From assembly GCA_977017575.1 (NCBI GenBank), contig CDRNVI010000154.1, forward strand, positions 1 through 64,000: DNA of 64,000 nt, in the 5' to 3' direction. This DNA is from Paramoeba atlantica. Lineage: Eukaryota; Protista; Discosea. Position 1 is the first letter of the stretch. The number at the start of each line of letters is the position of its first letter. Below are positions 12,038 through 64,000 of the stretch, piece by piece. The notes below the pieces were generated by a model that saw nothing but the letters and a program-made list of their open reading frames with translations, had not been told where the DNA came from and made no database searches. The position numbers were made by a program, and so were the translations under genes.

Positions 12038-12463
12038 TTTTTTTTTTTTTTTTTTTGAGGCAGACTTTATTCAATTAGTAGTTCTTAATCTAAGTCATTT
12101 GAATTACATTAAATTATGTTTGTTTTTAACCTCTAACAAGAGGTGAAGTTTTAAACTTCAGCTTAGTTCAGTCGGTCTTTATGCTGAACTTTAGAACTTC
12201 TGCAAGTTCAGGCTGGAGGATGTACATCAGAAGGGAGAATAATCCAAAGCTCCTTCCAAGGGAATTTATTCTCAACTTTTTAGCAGACAGGGCTGAGATG
12301 TAACCTGTTTCGATTTTCACACTTCTTCAAGAGCTCCTCACTCCAATCAAATCACTCTACAACACCAGAAAAATTTTCTATAATATCGAAAAACTGGGAT
12401 TTAAACTCACCCCCCCGAGGTTGGACATAGTCGAATTTACAACTAAACTACAGGCACCAACCC
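12038..12463 (-). mobile_element. SINE-A, full length (~425 bp)
   Basis: Poly(T)...GGCACCAACCC; 18-bp TSD TTTGCAAGTCTATTTATT at 12020-12037 and 12464-12481. Confidence 0.93.
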
Positions 12464-27517: not shown

Positions 27518-29922
27518 AATTATATAACACTGCCTCCAAAATATTATGGAAAACAGTATGTTTTTTTAAGCCCTATTGTGGTCTTTTTTTTTTTTTTTTA
27601 CATTTGTTCATTTGGTGGTGTTGTGTTGCTTGCTGCTATGAGATAAAGCTCTCACTCTTGTGAAAGGAAATGATTTTGTTGGAACTTTCTTTTTCAATCA
27701 ATTGATAGGTTTTGTTTCATTCTTTAGTTTGTGTTAAACAAAAGAAGTCCTTTTTTTTTTTAAAACTAATTTTTGATGAAGAGATGGTTGACAAATTTAT
27801 CACAAGTGCTATTTGTCTTTCACTTTTTCTTGTTCAGAGAGAAGATGGCTAGTGTTTTGTGTTGATTTTTCAATTCTTCAAAGTCTAATTTTTATACAAG
27901 CAGTTTGTCAGAGAATTATCAATAAGTTTTCATGGCCAAACAAAAGGACAAACAAAGTTATAACAAAACTCAGAGGTTAGACTTTTTGGAGAGAGTACAA
28001 GGATCAAAGAAGATGAAAGGTTTTTTTTTTTTTTTCTTTGCTTTCTTTAGTTGTTTTTTTTTAAGATTTTTTTTCTTTTATAAAATTTTCACTTTCTTTT
28101 CTTTTTTTTTCTCACTTTTTTTTTCATAAGTTAACCCTAGAACAAATTCTAGTAACTCTTTATCTGACAAGAAAATTTTAGTCAAAAAGACAGATCAATC
28201 TTTTTAATTTGTGAATGATTTACCCTCAATGAACTGTTCCATATAAAGTGTTCTGCAACTCTCACTTTTTTTACAACTCTTTTTGATTTTTTAAGTTCAA
28301 ATAAGAACTATGGAAAACAAGTTCTAATGATGATTATTAAAAAGTTGGAAAATGAACTGCAGTTGAGGTTTTTTGCAAAGACAATTTATAAGTTCTATGT
28401 TGCTATAAAAAAGAAAGAAGAAAAAAAAAACATTTCTAATTGATTGATGAACAATTTTTTTTTTTTTTTTTAAGATAAACTTTATTCAATTAGTAGTTTT
28501 TAATCTAAGCCATTTAAATTACATCAAATTATGTTTGTTTTTAACCTCTAATGAGAGGTGAAGTTTTAAACTTCAGTTTAGTTCAGTTGGTTTTTATACT
28601 GAACTTTAGAACTTCTGCAAGTTCAGGCTGGAGGATGCACATTAGAAGGGAGAATAATCTAAAACTCCTTCCAAGAGAATTTATCCTCAACTTTTTAACA
28701 GATAGGGCTGAGATGTAACCTGTTCCAATTTTCACACTTCTTCAAAAGCTCCTCACTCCAATCAAATCACTCTACAGCACCAGAAAAATTTTCTATAATA
28801 TCAAAAAACTGGGATTTGAACTTGCCCCCCCAGGGTTGAATATAGTCAAATTTACAACTAAACTACAGGTGCCAACTCATTGATTGATGAACAAGCAAAT
28901 TGAATATTATAAAAGTATCACTGATTAATTATCTCCCCTCTTTTATTATTTGAAAAGAAGTTAAAAAAAGAATTTACTTCTTTTTGTTTAGATTCCCCTT
29001 TTTTTATAAAGAAGGTTTATCATAAATTAGGTTCCTTTAATTTCTTTCTCCTTTTTATTCTCTTGTTAAAGAATAAAAACTCAAAACAAAAAAATAGAAA
29101 TTGAATCAAGAGTTTTGAGTTGCCAGTTTGGTGAAGCAATAAATAAGAGACAAAAAGAACAAATTAAAAAGAGTGAATATTAAAGAACAAAGTATGAACA
29201 AATTGCTGAAAATGTCAATCTAACCTTTCTAGCTTACCTTTATTGTTCAACAAAGTTGTTGATTTATGAACACAATATTTGTGATTGAGTTGGTTATTGT
29301 AAAGATAGACAATGTTTTTTTTCAGAGTTTCTTGGAGTGAAGAGGTTCTCTTGGTTGTTTTCAACTTTTTTTCTTCAAATTTCTTTTCAAAATAGCTTTC
29401 ATCAGCCTCAAGAAGCTAAAGAAAAGGAGTTTGAGTGTGTTTTATCATAGCCATTATTTTCTCAAACTTTTTAAGCTTAGCTTTTTTCACCTTTTTTGGA
29501 AAATAGAGTCACAGAGAATTTTTTGACTTAAAACACAACCTAAAAAAGGAATAAAAAATCATTCAAATTTTTTGTTTTATTTTTTTTTGCTTTTTTTTTG
29601 TTTTTTTTCAAGTCCAAAAGCAAAATAGTAAAGGAAAAAGAAAAAGATACAATACAAGGAATGTGTGGTGTTTGGTGAAAACCTCAAAAACTTTGAAAAC
29701 TATTGTAAAGTTGTGTTGGAAAACTTTGTGGATGAATATATTTCAGCCATCTTTTTAAACAATCTTATGGCCTCTGCAAGTAATAATTTGAATTCTCTTT
29801 GATTCTCATTCTTTTTCTTAAAAAATGTTCTCAAAAAGTTGTTTACAACACCTTAAAAGTATTGGATTGTAACAAAAAAAATAGATCTGAATTTTGTGTT
29901 TTAAACCTGAGATTTTTCATGA
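27518..29922. mobile_element. Unclassified ~2-kb insertion (element X, copy 1)
   Basis: Splits the LINE-2 zinc finger (PPIN | WRWCKKEKEFQTHLFETC); AATT on both sides; inverted copy at 31320-33030. Confidence 0.65.
28455..28878 (-). mobile_element. SINE-A
   Basis: 16-bp TSD ATTGATTGATGAACAA at 28439-28454 and 28879-28894; absent from the inverted copy of element X. Confidence 0.92.
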
Positions 29923-44674: not shown

Positions 44675-46096
44675 TGTGTGGCCAAGGGGAAGAGGGAGAA
44701 GGACAAGAAAACACAACAGAAAGGAACTGAAGAAAATGATTTATTTGTATCAACAAACAGAAAAGGGGGAACAAATGATTTGTGACAGCAGAGAAAAAGG
44801 GGGGAAAACAACACAAAACAAAGGAGAGAAAGACAGTGAAAACAGTGTGAAAAGAGCATTTTAGTGGGAGATAACTGCAATAGAATGCAGGTGGATCATT
44901 CATGAATCAACATCCCAAAAAGCACAGAGAAAAGGAAAAAGACAGGAGAAAAGAGAGGGGATGTCAAGTGGTGGGGTTTGGTGGAAGAAGATTGCTGAGA
45001 AAAGAAAAGAAAGGTGCAAACTTCATTCCATGGCGAGAGCCAGGAACGTGAAAAAACAAAGTCTCTCACGTGTTTATTTACGAACAGGTTTCAAGCACAT
45101 ATTTAACAATGTGACACCAAGTGCAAAAACAGAGAAACACACACAAATAAAAGCACACGTAAGAGACACAAAGACACAACAAGTTTAAGGAAGGGAACAA
45201 CAGATGACGTCAGCACAAATAAATTCATGGGCTGAAAGATCAGAATATGGAGAATAAACTATGCAATCAAATTGGGTCTGAAATAGGGCAAAGGTATTCT
45301 TGAAGGCACAATTCAATGATTGATCAATATCTCGGTGTGTAGTTGTCAGATTCAGATGGGACTAGCACCATTCGAAAGAGGAAGATGAGGCGCTTCAGGA
45401 TAGCACAACTCGTGATCATAGAATTCACAAATGATGTTCTCCATTAAGTCAAACATTCTTCAAACCAAGAATACTGATATTCTAACACTCCCTTTCATCA
45501 TGAAGTTAATTTGCAGAGCAATGGGGACGAATAAGATTATTCCGGTGAGGTGTAAACACATTGGGTCCAAGGGGTTTTGTAAAAATATCAGCAAGGTTAT
45601 CTTTAGTGGGCACATAATCCAATTCAATCAAGCCATCTTGCAACACTTTTCTTGTGTAGTGATCAAAGGCTTCAATTTGCTTAGTTCTTTGGTTTACATG
45701 GGGAATCTTTGCAATAGCCATCGCAGGTTCAGAATCGGATTGGAGCAAGAAAGGTCTTTTGTACGGGATGCACAACTCAGAGAGAATGTTATCAACAAAT
45801 TTCAATTCACGGGATGCTTCAGCAAGGGCATGGTATTCAGATTCACAACTGGACCAACAAACTTGAGGAGATTTCTTGGAATGCCAGGAAATGGGGGAAC
45901 CATTTGCAAAGATAGCAAAACCGTAAGATGAGGATCTGTCTTCTGTAACATCTTGATGGCTTGAGTCAGCTTGGGCAGAAATCACAAGTTCTTTAGTCTC
46001 AGATTTGGATTTGGGGAACACCAATTCATAATCAGGATATTTGGCAAGATAACCGAGAATTCACAGAGCAGCTTTGTCATGATCTTCAGTGTGGGT

Positions 46097-46525
46097 GGGT
46101 TGGTGCCCGTAGTTTAGTCGTAAATTCGACTATGTCCAACCCCGGGGGGGTGAGTTCAAATCCCAGTTTTTCGATATTATAGAAAATTTTTTTGGTGCTG
46201 TAGAGTGATTTGATTGGAGTGAGGAGCTCTTGAAGAAGTGTGAAAATCGGAACAGATTACATCTCAGCCCTGTCTGCTAAAAAGTTGAGGATAAATTCCC
46301 TTGGAAGGAGCTTTGGATTATTCTCCCTTCTGATGTGCATCCTCCAGCCTGAACTTGCAGAAGTTCTAAAGTTCAGCATAAAGACCAACTGAACTAAGCT
46401 GAAGTTTAAAACTTCACCTCTCGTTAGAGGTTAAAAACAAACATAATTTAATGTAATTCAAATGGCTTAGATTAAGAACTACTAATTGAATAAAATCTGC
46501 CTCAAAAAAAAAAAAAAAAAAAAAA
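46097..46525 (+). mobile_element. SINE-A (young)
   Basis: 18-bp TSD ATGATCTTCAGTGTGGGT at 46079-46096 and 46526-46543. Confidence 0.95.
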
Positions 46526-47060: not shown

Positions 47061-47486
47061 TTTTTTTTTTTTTTCTTTTTGAGGCAGACTTTATTCAATT
47101 AGTAGTTCTTAATCTAAGCCATTTGAATTACATTAAATTATGTTTGTTTTTAACCTCTAACGAGAGGTGAAGCTTTAAACTTCAGCTTAGTTCAGTCAGT
47201 CTTTATGTTGAACTTTAGAACTTCTGCAAGTTCAGGCTGGAGGATGCACATCAGAAGGGAGAATAATCCAAAGCTCCTTCCAAGGGAATTTATCCTCAAC
47301 TTTTTAGCAGACAGGGCTGAGATGTAACCTGTTCTGATTTTCACACTTCTTCAAGAGCTCCTCACTCCAATCAAATCACTCTACAGCACCAGAAAAATTT
47401 TCCATAATATCGAAAAACTGGGATTTGAACTTGCCCCCCAGGGTTGGACATAGTCGAATTTACGACTAAACTACGGGCGCCAACCC
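47061..47486 (-). mobile_element. SINE-A (young)
   Basis: 16-bp TSD AATTGGCACACCATAG at 47045-47060 and 47488-47503. Confidence 0.95.
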
Positions 47487-50446
47487 TAATTGGCACACCA
47501 TAGAGAGCTTTGTTCAATCAACAGAGATATTCGGGATGTTCAGGATCTTCAAAACCTTCAGGTTGAGTGACATAATAAACAATATCGCCATCAGGAATGT
47601 CAGCTTGGATATAGGCACTTGGGACATCTCCAGAATTCACATCAAGGTCAAACATAGCAGCAATAGCAAATGTCAAATTGAGAGATTCAGTGGTTGCAGT
47701 TCCAGCATAATTATCTTCTTGGTCAAAATTGGGATCTTTCGCAAGACTATGTTTTACACGAGAACCGTTTGCACAAAATCGAGCTTTGAACTTGGATATT
47801 ACACCATTTTTAGTCTTAATTCAAAATCGCCACAGGCCTTGCATAATAATGTGTTTCTTTCCATCCTTGGGGAACTTCGGGGGAGGAGGCACCAATTCCC
47901 AAGTCTTATTTTCAATATGAGCATCATATTCTCTTTTGCAGGCTTGTTTCCATTCTTCTTTTTCATTTGAACGGGCGGCTTGCTTGTAGGATTGAGGGGT
48001 AACTTTGTCATTAACAACTTGGTCAGCATGAAAGGCATAGTCAAGGAAATCAAGATCTTTGTAACCATGGCCAGGTTCACCAAACATATTCCAAGGTATT
48101 TTCAAGGCACTGAACGCTTTTCCAATGGCACTATGTTGGTAGTCAGGGTCTTGGAAGTGAGCAGAGTGTCTTACTTCTTCAGCTGCATCATCAGATTCAT
48201 TTGGTTCAGAGATGTTAATTTCATCATCAGGTTGAGATTGAGTAACAAGATTAAAATCAACTTCAGGATCAGTTTCAGAGTTGTATGTAGAGGAAGAGTA
48301 AGGAGATGCAGATTGGTCTGCAGGGTCATAAGGGTCAGGATCATGATCATCTGGTGGGTAATTGAACATTTCATAATTATCGAGGTCAATCGGCAATTCA
48401 GGTTCATTTTCATCAGCAGAGTCATAATCAGTTCCTTCACTTTCTTCATCCTTCATATCTAATTCTGTCATTTGAGGGAGAATTTCAGAATCAGGGGCTG
48501 CAGCAGCTTGAGCAGGATCAACAATTGGAGAAGAAGAGGAACTAGAAGAGGAGCAAGAGGAGCAAGAGGAAGATGTAGGTGTGTAAGAACCATCGCTCTG
48601 AGTAAAATTGGGAGGAGGCATACTGAGAAGCACCATCTCATCATCATCATCATCACTGTACACATCTGTACTGTGGGTTTTCTCATTCAAAGCAGTATGT
48701 TTTGAATGTAAGTTTACAGGAGCAGGAGTGGAATGGCCTATTCTGTTCTCCCTTTCAACATCAACAGGGTAATCATCATCAATTACAATTTCAGCAGAAT
48801 CATCAGGATTCTCATGTACACAATCCACAGGATTTGTGTTTGTACTCAGAACGTCGTCACGGTCTGATAATTTCGAAAAATCAATGAATTTTTCATTCAA
48901 ATAAGTGTCAAAATAGTGTGGGATATTCCCTCTATCAATACGCTTCAACAGGTTCGAAACACCAAAAACATATTCATCAAATACCACACTTGAACTTTCA
49001 AAAATAGTTTTCTTTACAGGGTCATACAAAATATAACTATTAATTTTCTCTGAGGGGCCAAGATAGATCGCAGGGCGTGCTTTAGGCATCAGTTTGGTTC
49101 TGTTCTTTCGGGGAATGTGCGCAAAAGCATGGCAACCAAAAGGGCGAATCAACTCAATATTGGGTTTGCGACCATACAGCTTCTGGAAGGGGGAAATCTC
49201 TTCACCTTCTTTCACAATGTAGGAGCTTACAACACTTGCAAGTTTTTCAGCATAATCCCAAAATTGTTCAGGCAATCCAGCATGGATTCGAATCGCTTGA
49301 GCAGTGTTCCATCAAGTCTCATTTGCATGTTCAGCAACACCATTTTCAGCAGAATCATCTCTACTAGAAAATCTAATATGAATTCCTTTTTCAGCACAAT
49401 ATTGTCCAATTTTCATTGCAGGACCGACAAATTCTCGAGCACCATCACATTGAATGATTTTGACCTTCACATCCAATTGTCTTTGAAGCTTTGCAATCAG
49501 ATTGATTAGCACTTCGCCAGCATCACTCTTTTTCTTGAGGAATTCAGATAAATCCATCTTGGAGTAGTCTTCAACAACTGAGAGAGAGTATTTGTTCTTC
49601 TGATAAGAAAGTATATTTTTCTCATGGTTGTCAATGTGCAACATTTCACCGAGTTTTCGTTTTGTTCTCGTACCAGGGGTATGACTTTTCTTTTTCGCTT
49701 TGGCCAACTCACAAGCAGTACAAACATTTTAATCCATTCTCAATCTGTGATATTGCAGGGGCAAACCGTCAACCGCACGAGCATTAATAGTCCTCTTCAA
49801 ACCAGAAAAATGACACAGTCTATTATGCCAATATTTCCATTCTTTCTCATGGGTCAGACAGAGGGTTCTACGGATTCTTTTCTTGCGGAGAGGTTGAGAT
49901 GAAGAAGCATCCTCAGGGGTTTCATTTTTTGGGTGAGTAACTTCTTCAGCAATATAAGATTGTTGATGGTTGGTTCGACTGGGTAAAGCCAAATAATACA
50001 AGCCATTGTTCTGTGAACCACTCAAAATCATCTGGGAATCACTCAAATTGATCTTCTTTTTCGTCACACGAATTTGGTCAGAATCCAAAACAACAGAAGC
50101 ATCCCAAGTTTCACACATGTGAGCCACAGAGAGAAGATTCATTTCACAATTGGGGACTACAGAGACATCTTGAAGAGGCAGCAAATCAGGATGAATTGCC
50201 AAGTCACCTTGCATTGTAACAGGAATTAGATCGCCATTCACTTGCTTGATGCTTATGGTCATTGCAGGTGGAGCATTTCTTGTTGTGAGATTTGGATCAT
50301 TCACAATTGTGTTTGAACAAGCTGAATCAGCAAGAGCAATTGCTCTGTTTGATTGTTTTGCAACAAAAGCAGATTGAATCGAAGATTGAGAAGAAGAAAC
50401 GAGAGCAGAAACGCAACAAGAGTTAACAGGAATATTGATTTTATTC

Positions 50447-50869
50447 GGGTTGGTGCCTGTAGTTTAGTCGTAAATTCGACTATGTCCAACCCCGGGGGGG
50501 CGAGTTCAAATCCCAGTTTTTCGATATTATAGAAAATTTTTCTGGTGCTGTAGAGTGATTTGATTGGAGTGAGGAGCTCTTGAAGAAGTGTGAAAATCGG
50601 AACAGATTACATCTCAGCCCTGTCTGCTAAAAAGTTGAGGATAAATTCCCTTGGAAGGAGCTTTGGATTATTCTCCCTTCTGATGTGCATCCTCCAGCCT
50701 GAACTTGTAGAAGTTCTAAAGTTCAGCATAAAGACCGACTGAACTAAGCTGAAGTTTAAAACTTCACCTCTCGTTAGAGGTTAAAAAAACAAACATAATT
50801 TAATGTAATTCAAATGGCTTAGATTAAGAACTACTAATTGAATAAAGTCTGCCTCAAAAAAAAAAAAAA
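50447..50869 (+). mobile_element. SINE-A (young)
   Basis: 16-bp TSD AATATTGATTTTATTC at 50431-50446 and 50870-50885. Confidence 0.95.
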
Positions 50870-55144: not shown

Positions 55145-56608
55145 TGTAAATGAGGCTCACAAAACCACCTCTGAAAAAACGAAGTCAAGAACTCAATCCG
55201 AATCAAAAAGCATGAACACATCCAAATCATCACATGTTGAAGAAACAGAGAGAAGATCATGGGAGAGGTTTGGAACAAACAAAACTTGACTTAAACTTAA
55301 GTCTCTTCCATCCATGAGGATTGAACCAGTTCTGTGTTTCTCAACAGGTAAAGCAGAGCCATTTGCTTGGGTTATTGATTCACCAGGGCCAGCAGCATTA
55401 TGTTGGATCATGTCAGGGTTGTTTGTGAGGGTAGGAAAAGCACTAGAATCAACAATCATGTGGCGAAAACCATCAGCAGTGTGAAGAGCAACAGAGTCAT
55501 CAGTGACATCCAAAAAACAAAAACCATCTGTGAGTTCATCATAGTGCTCATCAGTTTGTTGCTTATCAAGAAGAAGATCTTGGACAAGCTTGAGGAACTC
55601 CTCAGTAGAAGGTTTGGTGTAGAAGGCCATTTTGCAGATGCCAGTTATTGCAAATTGTGTGAGAAATGCTTCACCAACAGAGGTCTGGGGCTTTCCTTGC
55701 TTCTTTCTTCGACATTCATCCTTCCAGTGACCAGTCACCCCACACCAGTGGCAATGACCTTGATGAACAGTTGAACCATCAGGATGTTGATCACCAGGTT
55801 TGAATTTCTTTCCAGTTCTCTGATGTTTCTCCTCCTTTGCTTCAACCAACAAACCAACATGTGGTGGGAATCCAAAACTGGATTCTTTGCCATATTTAGA
55901 CAGAACTTTTTCTTCAAAGTGTGCCAAACTATTGACCAAATCCTCGAAAGATAAATCTTTCTGATATTTGAGTGTCTTTATGGGTTGGAACTCAGGACCA
56001 AGACCTCAAAGAAGAAGAGCCATCATACAGTGTTCTGAAACAGATTCATCATTCTCAGTAGATTCTATGGTGAGGGTCATACTTTGGGATACATAATCAT
56101 TGACAATTTTATTCTCCTTCTTTTTCAAAGTCATCAACTCATTTGTGAGATCCAGCAAAGATGCCATTGTTTTTTTGTTTTTTTTTTGGAAGTAGACTTT
56201 ATTCAATTAGTAGTTCTTAATCTAAACCATTTGAATTACATTAAATTATGTTTGTTTTTAACCTCTAACAAGAGGTGAAGTTTTAAACTTCAGCTCAGTT
56301 TAGTCAGTCTTTATGCTGAACTTTAGAACTTCTGCAAGTTCAGGCTGGAGAATGCACATCAGAAGGGAAAATAATCCAAAGCTCCTTCCAAGGGAATTTA
56401 TCTTCAACTTTTTAGCAGACAAGGCTGAGATGTAACCTGTTCTGATTTTCACACTTCTTCAAAAGCTCCTCACTCCAATCAAATCACTCTACAGCACCAG
56501 AAAAATTTTCTATAATATTGAAAAACTGGGATTTGAACTCACCCCCTGGGGTTGGACATAGTTGAATTTACGACTCATTACAGAATTTTTGTATGGTGCC
56601 AACGTGTC
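55145..56608 (-). pseudogene. Ty1/copia family C gag-protease fragment (split by SINE-A)
   Basis: TLAPYKNSVMASLLDLTNELMTLK...GLGPEFQPI; CHWCGVTGHWKDEC; IVDSSA; VLFVPNLSHDLLSVS. Confidence 0.85.
56170..56575 (-). mobile_element. SINE-A, slightly 5'-truncated
   Basis: Matches consensus up to TTTACGACT; short CATT duplication. Confidence 0.9.
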
Positions 56609-56684
56609 AATATTTGATTGGTTAAAAAATAAATTGAACTTTTTTTCGTTTTGTTCTCCATTTTTGATTCTAGCAACGAAAGGG

Positions 56685-57795
56685 AATGAGAAACTGCCAA
56701 AATGAACACCAAAAAAACCTCCAATCTCATTAGATGAAATCATGGAGATTGATTTCATTACTGAGAAAATTCAACAAACGAAAAAGAGGAAACAAAAAAC
56801 CATTGAGAAGCAAAAAAAACGCCGAAAAAGAGGAGTGGAAAAAACACAGCAGCCGCTGCTGATGGAGACCATTCCTGTTGATGAAGAGAGTTTCAATTTG
56901 AATGAGACAAAGTGATGGATGAACTCCATGATTCTTCCTGAATTTGAAAAGCGACTTGATTTTGCCTTGAAGAAACGAATTCGATCTTTTCGGATTCAGC
57001 TACCATTGCCAAAACAAATTTTCTGCTATGTCCAACCCCAGAGGGGTGAGTTCAAATCCCAGTTTTTCAATATTATGGAAAATTTTTCTGGTGCTGTAGA
57101 GTGATTTGATTGGAGTGAGGAGCTCTTGAAGAAGTGTGAAAATCGGAACAGGTTATATCTCAGCCCTGTCTGCTAAAAAGTTGAGGATAAATTCCCTTGG
57201 AAGGAGCTTTGGATTATTCTCCCTTCTGATGTGCATCCTCCAGCCTGAACTTGCAGAAGTTCTAAAGTTCAGCATAAAGACTGACTGAACTAAACTGAAG
57301 TTTAAAACTTCACCTCTCGTTAGAGGTTAAAAACAAACATAATTTAATGTAATTCAAATGGCTTAGATTAAGAACTACTAATTGAATAAAGTCTGCCTCA
57401 AAAAGAAAAAAAAAACAAAACAAATTTTCTGTAAGATTTTTTGTGAACCATTGAAAAAATTTGAAAAAGTGAAGTTTCAAGTCAATGAATCAGGACAATG
57501 TGCTCGAATCTGTTCTCAAGACAATTTAAAAAAACTGGATTCTTGCTTTTTGAACCGTTCTGAATGGCAAACCAAAAAGATTCTCTTGCAAAGTTCTCGC
57601 GGCAATATTTTTTTAAATGAAGAGGTAAATATCGTTCTTCATCATTGGATTGAATTTGATGTTATTCAAACTGATGAAAATTGAATAATCAAGTGTGAAT
57701 CTGAGTTGATTTTAAAATTTACGAAAAAAAAAAGTCAATTTGAATGCTGTGGAATCATTGAAGTTACAAATGCATCTGGCTTTCATTGCACTTAA
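56685..57795 (+). pseudogene. ORF-X: unknown protein of ~235 aa after SINE removal, basic N-terminus, TGA interruptions
   Basis: One frame ATG56685...TAA57795 once the SINE and one TSD copy are removed; internal TGA at 56703, 56913, 57682. Confidence 0.6.
57026..57415 (+). mobile_element. SINE-A, 5'-truncated
   Basis: 16-bp TSD CAAAACAAATTTTCTG at 57010-57025 and 57416-57431. Confidence 0.93.
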
Positions 57796-58056
57796 AGGAA
57801 ATTATTTGTTGAATTATTTTGAAACAAAATTAAATTTATTTTACAAAAAAATCTTGAAAAAAATGAAACTATTTTTTCCATTGTTAGTAAAATGTTGAAA
57901 AAAAAAGGGGAAAAAATTTAATTAGTAAATGAAAAAACTAACTTTTTCAGTTCGTCAAGTTCTTGCTGCATCTACCTTTGATGTAAAAGAATTTGATTCA
58001 TCTGAATTTTGAAAAAAATGAATTAATAAAAAATATTAATTGAAAAAGAGAAATGT

Positions 58057-60470
58057 TCAAATCCAAAAAAAAAATACTTGAGTTTGTGAGGATGTGTTAT
58101 TGCCACACACTGTTGATAGTTGGGGATTTTGAAGTGGTTGTGGGTTTGCCACCACTGTTGATTGATACATTGGTTGTTGAGCCAATCCATAAATTTGTGA
58201 ATTGCCATTTTGTTGAAATCGGATTTGGGGTGAAGGATTGAAATTTTGTTGGAATTGTTGGGGTGATTGAATAGAAAGTATTTGATAGGAAGTTTGGTTT
58301 TGTGGAACTGGTTGGAAATTGTAATTTGGTTGGGTTTGAGAAGATTGAGGAAGTGGGAGTTGAATTATTGTTTGTGGAGTTGAAAATGTTTCATAAGAAG
58401 TTTGTTGGGTTGTCATAGTTGGTTTTGTTGACTTTGTCGTTTTGTTGGTGAGTGGAAACACTGAACTGTTTTGTGTGTGTTTTCTGATTGTGAATAATTG
58501 TAAATTATTTGTTGCCCTTTTTTGTACAAAAGAGGTTTTGTTCTTTGGATCCATTTGTGGGCAAAAGAGTATAAACTTTCTTTTGTTCTTTTTGGCTTTT
58601 GGAACACATTTGATAAAAGACATTGAACCAAGCTTGTTCTTTCTTTGTTCTTTGTTCTTGTTCTCTGTTCTTGTCTCTATCTCCATACTATTCTGTAGAG
58701 GACTCAACTAAGTTGGTTCTTGTCGAGGAAAAAATGGGTTGGATTGAATTTGAATGACTTGAGGTATTGGTGGTGGTTGATTTTGAATAAAAAGATAGGG
58801 GTTTGTTGCTCCTTCTTTGAATGGAATGGGGGTGGAATTTGATTGAAAAGACTGAAGTGGCAGTTGTTGAATTATAGATTTGTTTCGATCTATTGGATCA
58901 GAGGAAGTGGAATTAGAGTGGAATTGTTGAATATGGTCAAGTGTTGGTACATTTGAAATCATTGGCTCAAAAGTTAGTGGATTGGTGTTTAATTGTGATT
59001 GTTTCATTTTTGTTGAAGAAGAGTGGAGTATTAATTGACTGGAGACAGGTTTTTCAGGTTGTAAGGATTGGTTAGTTTCAGTTGGTGAAGGAGATTGTTG
59101 AAGTTCTGGTGATTGGGGAAGTGGGGAACCCTGTGGAGATGAGGTCACTGGTAATGAGTGATCAGTTTCCTTATTCGTGTTGGCTTTCTTTTGCTTTTTT
59201 TCATTTGGGAGGGAATCGAAAATGTAATCTTCTGAATGGTTGTGTCGTGTGGGACGCAGGGAGGGTTTTGGAGTTTGTTTCTTATTATTTTGAGGATGTG
59301 CAGTCTGAGGTCGCTTGGGGATCATCAAGGGAAGAGGAGAGGTTTCTCGGGCTGATTTTTCCTTCCTCTTGTGCTTTGGCATTTCCTTTCCTTGCTGAAA
59401 CTCCTTTGAGGCTTTTTGGTTGGTTGATTTTTGCCAAGGGAGATGACAGTCAGTGTTCAAGGTCTTAATGAAGAGGTAATCAGAACTTGGAAAAAGAGAA
59501 TCCACTCTGTTCAATTGAATCTTTTCTTTAATCAACAGCATTGAGTGAACGAGTTCAAAAACATCCCTTGGATTGAGTAGTTTGGAGGGGTTCAACTTCT
59601 CTAAAATCGCTTGGTTGGTTGCGGGGAAATCGTCTTCTCGAATAAAAATGAAAACTTCATTCAGCAATGAATCAAGGAGTTCTTTCTTACTCAGAACCAG
59701 CAAATAATCCTTTAGAAGTAAAAGTGTGCACGGAGTTAGTGATGTTGATGAATCTCATGGTTCACCACAAGAATTACTTCTAACGAAAAGGTCCCCTTGA
59801 TTTGGAAAGGGTAAGCAGAGTTGGAGCAAGCAGGAATATCCCTGTTTCCCCTGACTACAGAGGGTTTCAACTTGACTGACAAGTGGTTTCTTTTCGTCGA
59901 AGATAAGAGGCCTCAAAAGGGGAGGGAAAGTTTTGTTGCTTTGCAAATTCTGTAATTTTCCAGGATCCAAATACCAAAAGGAATCTTCTTCAAAGACCTC
60001 TTCTCAAATCCAGAACTGAGGGTAAGTTGAAGACTCACCAATTCCTGAGCTGATTTTCCAGCAAACTGATGAAAAAAAAGTAACTTCCTTTTTTGTTTGT
60101 TCACTAAGGTTGAAATATTTTTTTTTCTCGTGGTCAATTTGAGGTGAGTTTGTGTCCACTTTTATTGTGGTTTCAAAGGTGGGGGAGACTCATGCCAACC
60201 ACGATGTTCGCTTCAAAAAATCCACATAGGAACCACCACAATAATTTGAGTATCTGACGTAATCTGGGCAAAATGCTGTGTTGCAATCGAAATAATTGAA
60301 CCCCTTGGAAATATCAGAGACTCCAACGAGATAATTGGTGACGAGTTTGGTGTTTTTTTCAATTTTCGATTTTGTAATTAAACTGAAAAACTAACCAGAG
60401 CAACAATCAAGAAACCCCAATAATGAACTGAACCATTTTGAATCTCAGAATTGCAATATAAACACTTCAT
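58057..60470 (-). pseudogene. ORF-Y: ~770-aa unknown protein, Cys-rich N-terminus, Q/P/S/T-rich C-terminus, probable intron 60395-60304
   Basis: MKCLYC...HYWGFLIVAL, GTTAGT...TTCCAAG 92-nt intron, then one frame broken only by TGA at 60192, 60006, 59757 and TAG at 58710. Confidence 0.6.
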
Positions 60471-60528
60471 TGTGGAAAGGAAAAGAAAATAGAAGTGGAA
60501 AACTGAGGGAAGAAAGGGTCGAAAGATC

Positions 60529-61073
60529 TTTTTCACAAAAAAACTTTTTTTTTTGTGGGGAAGCAAAAATACTCTTTTTTCATTTCAACACTTCAAAAAG
60601 TTCAATTTGAGGAACTTTTTGAATTTTTTTATTGTTGAAAAATTTTAAAAAGGAGTGGTGGCTAAATATTTCAAATGAATTAAACTCTCTCTGAAAAGGA
60701 TTTTTTAGTTTTATTGAAGGTTTAAAACTTTTTCCACAAAAACTTTTTTTTTTGTGGGGAAGTAAAAATACTCTTTTTTCATTTCAATACCTCAAAAAGT
60801 TCAATTTAAGGAACTTTTTGAATTTTTTTATTGTTGAAAAATTTTAGAAAGAAGTGGTGGCTAAATATTTCAAATAAATTAAATTCCCTCTGAAAAGGAT
60901 TTTTTAGTTTTATTGAAGGTTTAAAACTTTTTCTACAAAAACTTTTTTTTTTGTAGGGAAGCAAAAATACTCTTTTTTTATTTCAACACTTCAAAAAGTT
61001 CAATTTGAAGAACTTTTTGAATTTTTTTGTTGTTGAAAAATTTTAGAAAGGAGTGGTGGCTAAATATCTCAAA
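60529..61073. repeat. ~200-bp tandem repeat x2.7 with internal hairpins
   Basis: Units start at about 60534, 60735, 60934; units carry TTCAAAAAGTTC-N8-GAACTTTTTGAA (one mismatch in unit 2) and CACAAAAA...TTTTTGTG-type stems. Confidence 0.9.
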
Positions 61074-61126
61074 CACAATTTGTGGGGCAGGCAGGAAAGG
61101 CAAAAAACTTGAGGAGTTTGAGAAAA

Positions 61127-62397
61127 ATGGGCCGCTTTCAAAACGCTCGTGAGATTTTACAAGAATTGAACATTTCTTGGGAAAACTTATCAAAGCAAAT
61201 CCAATTGAAAATTTGAGATTTAAAAATTGAGGGAAGTGAAGGGAACCATGGTGTTCTTGAGTTTGAAGGAAGTGGGGTTCGTTTTCGAGGCCATCCTCTT
61301 GCACCTGATCACATGATTGCATGTTGAATGCATCCTACTTGGATCATTACTTTCAGGAGATTCCCTCCGAAGCTCAAAGAAAGGCCTTCATCTCCTTTGA
61401 TTTTGCTTTTTTAACAAAAGGATTGAAAATCCTTCGGTTCGATGATGAGTCAGAAGGGGGGTTAAATAATGAATGGGATCGGAAAGGTTGGCTTCGAATC
61501 TATTCAGAATTGAATGACAGACCCAAAATTTTGGAACAACTTTCAGATCAATCAGGTGGGTTTTTAAAGCACTTGGATTTATTGGTTGAGGAAAACCTTT
61601 TAAATGTTGTTTCTGGGGATTTATACATTTCATCTCAGAGTGGTCATAATGACATGTTTTTTTGCTCCCAGGTAGCTTCAGAAGAGGAGGTTTACAAAAT
61701 GTCAATTCTTCAATCTTTGCTTCTCTCTTTGAACCTCCTCCTGCCAAAATGTAAGCAGAATGCTCAGGGGTGGAACCTCATAGCTCTTGGGCTTCACAAA
61801 ATTCAAAACTCTTTAATGAAATGGGCTCAAACTCAACATCTAACGGACAACATGAAGAAAATTCTTTCATCCCTTTTAATTGCATATGAGATAAGAGAGT
61901 ATTGCTTGATGAAGTGGATAACTGGATTAAAAAAGAATTCAAACTTTTTTGTGGAACAGATTGGGATGTGCAAGAAATTTCAAACAGCTTGGAAGGAAAC
62001 AGGAAAAGATATGAGAGTTCAACTTCCAATGAAATGTACTCAACAAATTTGGATTGGAGGAGGCTGTGGAACCCTCCTCCACAAAGATGCTTCAAACTTC
62101 GGTTTGTCATTTTGCCAATATTTGGGTTTCAATTGGAGGGAAAGTGATTGTGGTGTTGGTCTCCCCGAACTTCGAATCCTTTGAAAAAATTCACCAGAAT
62201 CTGCAATGGCCATTCGTGCTTGTCATTACTTTCACATGAGTTTGCCACTTGATTTAGGGTTGAAAATGATGGGTGCGTCTTTTGTTAATCTTAAAAAAAA
62301 AATCAAATCCTCTGAAAAACTAAATAAAAGGAAAGCAACACACAAACCAAAGCCCTCAAAAAAATTGGTTGAAGTGAAATTGATAAAAAACTTATAA
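61127..62397 (+). pseudogene. TET/JBP-family 2OG-Fe(II) dioxygenase (decayed)
   Basis: HKDASN at 62080-62097, GVGLPEL, HMS at 62233-62241, KMMGASF at 62263-62283, basic tail, TAA 62395-62397; TGA at 61214, 61325, 62182 and one frameshift near 61320-61415. Confidence 0.75.
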
Positions 62398-62400
62398 ATT

Positions 62401-64000
62401 TTATTTCTCATCACCATCTTCTTTCAAAGAAATTTCAGTTTTGAGATCATACATTCATGTGAGGAAAAGGTCTTCCTGAGCAGCTCAAATCAATTTTGGG
62501 TCTGTCACCACTTCACTTCTTCAATTTAAATTCATTTGAGTTGCTCGAATTTCTTGTGGGATATTCAAAGAGGTTTGATATTGATTTGCTAAAGAATGGC
62601 TGTATCAAAAACAAAGTCCAGTTGTGAGGACTTTAGCGTTCAGATTTGCAGAACCTCGTTGGCTACTCTGATAGAAGTGCATATGATCCAAGTAGTGGAC
62701 CTGCTCCTCAGCTTCTGCTGCCCAAGGTCACAAATTCCCAAACTGACAATATGTATCCACTGCGTGAGCTTCCAGAATGTGGAAATAAATTCACCAGGTG
62801 GAACCCATCTCCCCTCCCCAATCCGTGAAGCTTTCCTTCCAAGAACCAATTTTTTTTTCAAAATTAATGGTGACTGCTTCACAATTTGACCCTTTTGGGG
62901 GGTCACTTGTCAGCATTTGAAAACATTCTCAAAAGGTAACCTACAATGATGTTGTGGATGGTCGATTTGGATTGCAATAAAAGATTCTTTCGACATTCTC
63001 CAATACTTGCCACATTTGAGTGCCTGTGTATCGCCCCAATTTCCAATTTCCATCATCACCAACTCGGAATCGAAAAGGAATTTTACATTTAGAAAACACA
63101 AAGACCAGCAACTTCTTTTTTTTTTTTTGAGGCAGACTTTATTCAATTAGTAGTTCTTAATCTAAGCCATTTGAATTACATTAAATTATGTTTGTTTTTA
63201 ACCTCTAACGAGAGGTGAAGTTTTAAACTTCAGCTTAGTTCAGTCGGTCTTTATGCTGAACTTTAGAACTTCTGCAAGTTCAGGCTGGAGGATGCACATC
63301 AGAAGGGAGAATAATCCAAAGCTCCTTCCAAGGGAATTTATCCTCAACTTTTTAGCAGACAGGGCTGAGATGTAACCTGTTCCGATTTTCACACTTCTTC
63401 AAGAGCTCCTCACTCCAATCAAATCACTCTACAGCACCAGAAAAATTTTTCCATAATATCGAAAAACTGGGATTTGAACTCGCCCCCCCGGGGTTGGACA
63501 TAGTCGAATTTACGACTAAACTACGGGCGCCAACCCAAAAAAAGACCAGCAACTTCAATGATTTGGTCTTCAATGAGTGATTCTTCTCAAATCGTTCTTT
63601 TGTGGAGCTTTTCTCATATTCTTCCTCCAGATGAGATTTCAACAAAAGGAAAGAGGAAGGTGAAGAAGAAGAAGATGAAGAGGAAGAGGAAGAGGAAGAG
63701 GAAGAAGATGAAGATGAGGAGGGTAAGGAAGATGAAGGTGAGTTCAATGATGAGGATGAACATGAAGAGAAATCTTGAAAGTCAGCCCACCACTTTGCTA
63801 TTAAATCAATTCTCAAAATTAAATGAGCTGAGTTCTTCGGTATCTTTTACTTACAAAAGTTTGATTTCCATTCGTCCTGCAATGACTCACTGTTCAATCC
63901 AACCATTTTTCCTCTTCTCAAAATTGTGTATTCTCGTTAGAATATCAATAGAAAAGCAAGAGATTAAGTTCATCATGGCATTTCTGTTGAGACCTCCCCC
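62401..64000 (-). pseudogene. RAG1/Transib/Chapaev-like DDE transposase, C-terminal part (runs off the window)
   Basis: CKIPFRFRVGDDGNWKLGRYTG...IYFHILEAHAVDTYCQFGNL*PWAAEAEEQVH...FYQSSQRG; 7 TGA and 1 TAG in 62401-63115; SINE insertion; Ser-rich insert at ~63650-63770. Confidence 0.75.
63116..63536 (-). mobile_element. SINE-A (young, CpG-rich)
   Basis: 16-bp TSD AAAGACCAGCAACTTC at 63100-63115 and 63541-63556. Confidence 0.95.

Follow-up and report, generated by a model that had tools for sequence, protein, structure and literature searches.

The window analysed here, a stretch of 64,000 nucleotides from Paramoeba atlantica (contig CDRNVI010000154.1, positions 1 to 64,000), ends within a long minus-strand reading frame that is interrupted by stops and carries two histidines and a downstream glutamate at the spacing they have in mouse RAG1. 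A first-pass annotation took this frame for the catalytic region of a cryptic RAG1-like transposase, with a bearing on the origin of RAG. The question is what the frame encodes, and how close it stands to RAG1 as opposed to the other transposases that share such a motif. We conclude that minus strand 62485-64000 is, in all likelihood, the decayed 3' part of the DDE transposase gene of a cut-and-paste DNA transposon of the CMCT clade, which comprises EnSpm/CACTA, Mirage, Chapaev, Transib, Plavaka, ESTA, Lanisha and RAG1 (Kojima, 2025; PMC12730594). The element is of an ordinary kind, a decayed copy whose family is new but whose clade is known. Its bearing on RAG origins is small and leaves the existing picture unchanged, because the motifs are clade-wide, no specific affinity to Transib or RAG1 emerged, the window copy is a pseudogene, and most copies of the family are without the catalytic core as well.

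The motif itself is as first described. Over 62790-62704, minus frame 1 reads I-Y-F-H-I-L-E-A-H, with His codons at 62781-62779 and 62766-62764, and after a TGA at 62730-62728 it continues as P-W-A-A-E-A-E-E (62704-62727), whose three Glu codons are 62715-62713, 62709-62707 and 62706-62704. The third of them lies 20 residues beyond the second His, and both the H-x4-H and the H-to-E distance of 20 that had been reported are thus confirmed. The H-x4-H within F-H-I-L-E-A-H (62764-62781, minus strand) is invariant in all relatives and is the counterpart of the RAG1 zinc ligands H937 and H942, while the last Glu is the counterpart of the catalytic E962; relatives read P-W-(A/G/S)-x-E-A-G-E here, the window Glu at 62709-62707 standing where they have Gly. 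The frame as a whole, termed ORF-C (62485-64000, minus strand; 96-97% DNA identity to the two copies on contig L001), reaches its natural stop at 62487-62485 and at its other end runs past the window, so that it represents the C-terminal two-thirds or so of a transposase pseudogene of about 653 codons. A Ser-rich low-complexity linker (63652-63768, minus strand) occupies the place at which relatives have an acidic or Ser-rich linker. The string NSAHLILRI (63808-63834, minus strand) had been likened to the D-x-x-H motif that follows the CxxC insert, but it aligns instead with L-x-x-R-x-F-x-x-W-W, a segment that in the relatives immediately precedes the acidic or Ser-rich linker and lies about 190 residues downstream of the true C-x-L-H.

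The frame is also broken by a SINE of 425 bp (63116-63540, minus strand), whose head is tRNA-like and whose tail is an A-run. This insertion, which the first-pass annotation had removed before reading the frame, is real: L001 and L002 run straight through the site, the SINE is absent there in L003, L004 and L005 too, and it is bounded by a 16-bp direct duplication (63100-63115 and 63541-63556). About 30 further copies of it occur in the window and related loci. The copies in the window, of about 425 bp and 91-98% alike, lie at 12044-12463, 28459-28879, 46096-46516, 47068-47489, 50444-50868, 56178-56575, 57026-57412 and 63116-63540; the 16-bp duplication was checked at one site. Neither ARAGORN nor Rfam made a call within the SINE. 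The transposon itself had inserted into the SINE copy at 56178-56575 and was later struck by two more SINEs.

ORF-C belongs to a multi-copy transposon of about 7.5 kb with 48-bp inverted ends (5'-CA..TG-3'). Copies were found by a word search with the neighbouring plus-strand ORF, which returned proteins 79-95% identical from one ENA assembly, and contigs L001-L005, L008 and L009 match window positions 56576-64000 at 91-97% DNA identity. The left terminal inverted repeat, which starts CATTAC, lies at 56576-56623 on the plus strand and recurs inverted at the other end of the element in L001, L002, L003, L004 and L008; by comparison with L001, the right repeat would lie about 1.18 kb past the end of the window. 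All copies end at the identical 48-bp sequence, and all ends start CATTA(C/T). A scan of metagenomes for the inverted-repeat sequence returned nothing. The termini are fixed by a paralogous empty site in L002 for the L008 insertion, from which it follows that the element has moved. This filled and empty pair sits in a T-run and allows a target duplication of 0-2 bp, not 5. The two flanks of the L003 copy lie in different contexts and are not contiguous in a paralogue, and none of the flanking dinucleotides at nine ends is TA.

Two further ORFs are present in every copy, and neither has a match in Pfam. The first (61321-62301, plus strand) is convergent with the transposase gene and is a TET/JBP-like passenger by its H-K-D...H motif only. 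A TET/JBP-like ORF of the same motif lies at L004 1899-2510; L004 also has a second TET/JBP-like relative, 30% identical and outside the element, and there is therefore more than one family of such genes. The other, ORF-A (58060-60420, minus strand), spans 683 codons in L001 (6581-8632); its N-terminal 340 residues or so are Cys-rich and are followed by a long Gln/Pro/Ser-rich tail; in the window it is split, relative to L001, by an insert of about 300 bp (58407-58709). Tandem repeats of about 200 bp lie between ORF-A and the TET-like ORF in all copies (60528-61073 in the window). On L001 (1-12792 of the 17.6-kb contig ctg3419c) two element copies, 99.4% identical and 7745 bp apart, come with a 284-bp spacer, the second copy being without the first 16 bp of the left end. 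The pair has the look of a tandem duplication more than of two separate insertions, and the final 'c' of the contig name may mark a circular assembly path.

Compared codon by codon with L001, ORF-C shows nine premature stops, a deletion of 4 bp and the inserted SINE; the window copy is thus a pseudogene. Of the ten in-frame stops in ORF-C, five are CGA to TGA changes: the codons at 63947, 63920, 62931, 62730 and 62607 read CGA in L001 copy 2. At 62943 a TGG has become TAG, the TGA at 62523 is CAA in L001 copy 2, the stops at 63849 and 62793 are also present in that copy, and it is against the same copy that the 4-bp deletion is placed near 63900. Across 4.8 kb, 118 of the 141 differences from L001 are C to T or G to A towards the window, and over 58710-64000 the rate of C to T change reaches 28% at CpG but only 1-5% elsewhere. 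The observed/expected ratio of CpG is 0.35 for the element and 0.21 for the window as a whole, and the pattern of decay is consistent with methylation of repeats at CpG in this genome. A variant genetic code in which TGA is sense was considered and rejected, as better copies carry CGA at those codons; CpG-biased decay accounts for the stops, and the standard code therefore holds.

The homology of the tail module was established from a better copy. A stop-free query of 135 residues (L001:2957-3361), searched against 1.84 billion protein representatives, found eight meaningful relatives, six of them 41-46% identical at E values of 1e-20 to 1e-30. All come from this assembly or from environmental metagenomes, and none is named. 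Both His and the E-x-x-E are invariant in the seven relatives compared, and W-R-I-Y-x-H-I-x-x-x-H, G-x-L-x-P-W and E-A-G-E are conserved throughout the alignment. The relatives P0024 and P0025 begin with M-C-G-D-L, followed about 20 residues on by C-P-x-C and then by C-x-L-H-C-L-L-R-I-G; in P0025 the cysteine and histidine motifs read C-P-Y-C and C-L-L-H-C. On contig L006, P0025 is preceded by a 790-codon ORF with W-K-L-H-A-D-G. That locus (L006 1725-6130) represents a second family with this type of transposase from the same assembly, its tail being 44% identical, and is split into ORFs of 790 and 645 codons by a pyrimidine-rich gap, perhaps an intron; the contig has no TET-like gene. In a word-index protein search the N-terminal piece returned only copies of the same repeat, and P0025 only itself.

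The catalytic core that should accompany such a tail is found in other members of the family. A tblastn search with the two proteins of the L006 locus showed that L005, itself a copy of the window family, has 1.53 kb more than L001; L009 has this segment too, and in DNA the two are 93-95% identical to the window family. In L005 this additional segment reads, in a single frame, W-K-L-H-L-D, F-V-F-P-F-L-I-F-Q-G-K-E-D, V-M-C-G-D-L...C-P-C-C and M-C-T-L-H-S-L-L-R-I, so encoding the first and second Asp, the CxxC and the C-x-L-H, and it aligns with the second family at L006 with E values of 3.5e-51 and 3.6e-23. The two catalytic Asp are accordingly seen in L005 (W-K-L-H-L-D and M-C-G-D-L), in L006 and in P0024 and P0025, but not within the window, and the C(2)C with the further conserved His (C-P-C-C and M-C-T-L-H in L005) is lost from the shorter copies. 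The Asp pair and CxxC that had been expected upstream of the tail do exist, together with the C-x-L-H, in these full-length members of the family.

A link to RAG1 in particular is less easily found. Searches with hmmscan that covered every stop-free piece of the window, L001 and the L005 core gave no Pfam match, Transposase_21, DUF4218 and the RAG1 domains included, and searches of PDB sequences (phmmer with three pieces, hmmsearch with the family profile) matched no chain, RAG1 and Transib included, at E values up to 10. The full model of P0025 has a pLDDT of 45; ranks 2-10 of its Foldseek matches are RAG1 or HzTransib, and this low-confidence model realigned to RAG1 with Z 7.2 over 129 residues. 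The tail-domain model of P0020 (pLDDT 61, pTM 0.51) has RAG1, BbRAGL or HzTransib at Foldseek ranks 1-16, with probabilities of 0.57-0.89 and E values of 0.3-1; over the two models the top Foldseek ranks, nearly all of them RAG1, BbRAGL or HzTransib, have probabilities of 0.7-0.89. A search of 48,161 chains with an aligner that does not depend on Foldseek placed BbRAGL first (Z 7.3, rmsd 3.4, 125 residues, 16% identity), HzTransib second (Z 6.8) and RAG1 at Z 6.2 and 5.8, values of a kind (Z 6-7) that helical models reach by chance, obtained from mediocre models and for the tail module only. The RAG1 structural matches have about twice the aligned length of the unrelated helical matches around them, and the end points of the alignment to mouse RAG1 (model residues 34-168 on 826-955) put H150, H155 and E175 of P0020 on 937, 942 and 962, the register to be expected from the motif and the known RAG1 residues. 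Taken together, the models point to a weak but consistent structural link of the tail to RAG1, BbRAGL and HzTransib. A shape search of the Atlas gave only a weak Plavaka/DUF6830 match (TM 0.35). In language-model features the tail is nearest to DUF4218 (0.83) and then to RAG1_ZnH2 (0.80), and the L005 core to Transposase_21 (0.94, 11 hits) and to RAG1_RNase_H/ZnC2 (0.92, 5 hits), so that the features of the core lean to EnSpm at least as much as to RAG1.

The most far-reaching alternative is that the family is the specific sister of Transib and RAG1, nearer to them than to EnSpm, Chapaev or Plavaka, and hence an early-branching RAG1-like transposon of an amoeba that would inform RAG origins. 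Such a placement would agree with the H-x4-H and W-A-x-E-x-x-E at exact RAG1 spacing and with RAG1, BbRAGL and HzTransib as the top structural matches. We nevertheless regard it as improbable. The core is nearest to Transposase_21, with 11 hits at or above 0.9, ahead of RAG1 with five, the tail is nearer to DUF4218 than to RAG1_ZnH2, and sequence searches matched no RAG1 entry in Pfam or the PDB. The structural ranking, too, may reflect what there is to match: the PDB is not known to contain an EnSpm, Chapaev or Plavaka structure, and if there is none, RAG and Transib would be the sole members of the clade that a structure search could return. Termini starting CATTAC(A/G)G are not the RSS-like CAC..GTG ends that the first-pass annotation had suggested seeking, the empty site points to a target duplication of 0-2 bp and not 5, and the RAG2-like kelch gene also proposed did not appear, the other two ORFs of the element having no Pfam kelch match. 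Nor does H-x4-H set RAG1 apart from EnSpm, as had been supposed, since the signature of the clade as a whole is H(3-4)H (PMC12730594) and the spacing falls within it. What stands of the original proposal of a RAG1/Transib/Chapaev relative is that the tail belongs to the clade that contains RAG1, Transib, Chapaev and EnSpm; what does not is a sequence link to RAG1 particularly. A looser form of the idea, in which the family and its metagenomic relatives make up a new deep CMCT lineage branching beside Transib/RAG1 rather than EnSpm, is only slightly less doubtful; were it true, RAG1-like transposons, here with a TET/JBP passenger, would extend to Amoebozoa.

A second alternative concerns the copies that, like both copies on L001 and those on L002, L003, L004 and L008, are without the 1.53-kb segment. 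These six of the eight copies share one common junction, which corresponds to a point about 75 bp beyond base 64000 and hence outside the window. The deletion, of 1527 bp net, is in frame and leaves the 653-codon ORF, in which the N-terminal 245 residues are joined almost directly to the linker and tail (for one local BLAST the three stops of this ORF were given as X). A tree of nine copies is star-like, with deletion and full types intermixed. It could be supposed that the truncated product is itself functional, as a repressor or a DNA-binding helper comparable to the truncated products of the P element and Ac: the reading frame is preserved across the deletion, the derivative is the commoner form, and the best copy has only three stops in 653 codons. 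We consider this very unlikely, as stops or frameshifts occur in each of the copies examined, the substitutions resemble CpG decay free of constraint, and it is ordinary among DNA transposons for non-autonomous derivatives to outnumber their parents. We return to the reading that most copies derive from a single in-frame internal deletion of 1.53 kb, which we hold highly probable as part of the same explanation as the decayed transposase gene, and the window copy is probably non-autonomous.

The last alternative, that non-coding or unrelated sequence resembles the motif by chance, might draw on the want of a Pfam or PDB sequence match for any piece, but is refuted by relatives that keep the motif invariant at E 1e-20 to 1e-30, by better copies that restore the open frame with CGA in place of the window TGA, and by the single ORF of L005 that joins the motif to both Asp and the CxxC. 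The tail module of the window is a genuine homologue of the H-x4-H...E module of the clade, in which a ZnH2 site accompanies the catalytic Glu.

A model for the family can be drawn from these observations. According to the model, the full-length enzyme would be of about 1160 residues, with an RNase-H-like core that carries the two Asp, an insert opening with the CxxC and C-x-L-H, and a helical tail in which the third catalytic residue, Glu, stands 20 residues beyond the H-x4-H. Of this enzyme the window retains the tail module and a linker only. If RAG1 is a guide, a zinc ion would be bound by the two Cys and two His, and this C2H2 site would tie the Glu-bearing helix of the tail to the RNase-H core and its active site. 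The DDE enzyme made by full-length copies is expected to bind the 48-bp ends, cut them and rejoin them. Deletion-type copies keep these ends and could be moved only in trans, with enzyme from full-length copies. The window copy is further inactivated by CpG deamination (CGA to TGA), by the 4-bp deletion and by the SINE insertion.

Our analysis adds a divergent and unannotated family to the EnSpm-Transib-RAG1 transposase clade. It also offers an example outside fungi of a transposon with a TET/JBP-like gene, a combination published for fungi only, where ESTA is among the members that carry one (PMC12730594). ESTA are EnSpm-like transposons of rust fungi with TA duplications, and their transposases match RAG1 by HHpred (PMC12730594). 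The two are likened here by description: each unites, in one element bounded by inverted repeats, a TET/JBP-like passenger with a transposase of RAG1-like or EnSpm-like kind, whereas the flanks of the present family at nine ends are not TA and its host is not a rust fungus.

Against RAG1, BbRAGL and HzTransib, the helices modelled for the tail superpose over 119-130 residues, the H-x4-H and W-A-x-E-x-x-E have identical spacing, and the CxxC comes about 20 residues after the second Asp in both. Unlike these proteins, however, with which identity is 15-19% and no sequence match is significant, the family has no RAG2-like partner and, by Pfam, no Chapa or RING domain. Its termini differ as well: Transib has heptamer-like ends and a 5-bp duplication (PMC4411706), whereas the family has CATTAC(A/G)G in place of CAC..GTG, and no 5-bp duplication. 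For core and tail alike, the named feature clusters that come nearest are those of EnSpm/CACTA, the termini CATTA and CACTA are one base apart, and D-x(19-20)-C-P-x-C is common to both. Set against this, hmmscan finds neither Transposase_21 nor DUF4218 in the family, and H-x4-H is present where plant CACTA elements usually have H-x3-H.

The clade as a whole is the better comparison. Its hallmarks are D, D, E, C(2)C and H(3-4)H, with mostly 5'-CA..TG-3' termini and duplications of 2-5 bp (PMC12730594). The family departs from the named lineages in that none of their Pfam models detects it and in its long low-complexity linker and the distance of about 265 residues between the two Asp. It resembles them in the order of its key residues (D, D, C(2)C, one conserved His, H(3-4)H, E), in the long stretch inserted between the second Asp and the Glu, and in its 5'-CA..TG-3' termini; judged on its predicted protein and its ends, the repeat family carries every sequence hallmark of the CMCT clade.
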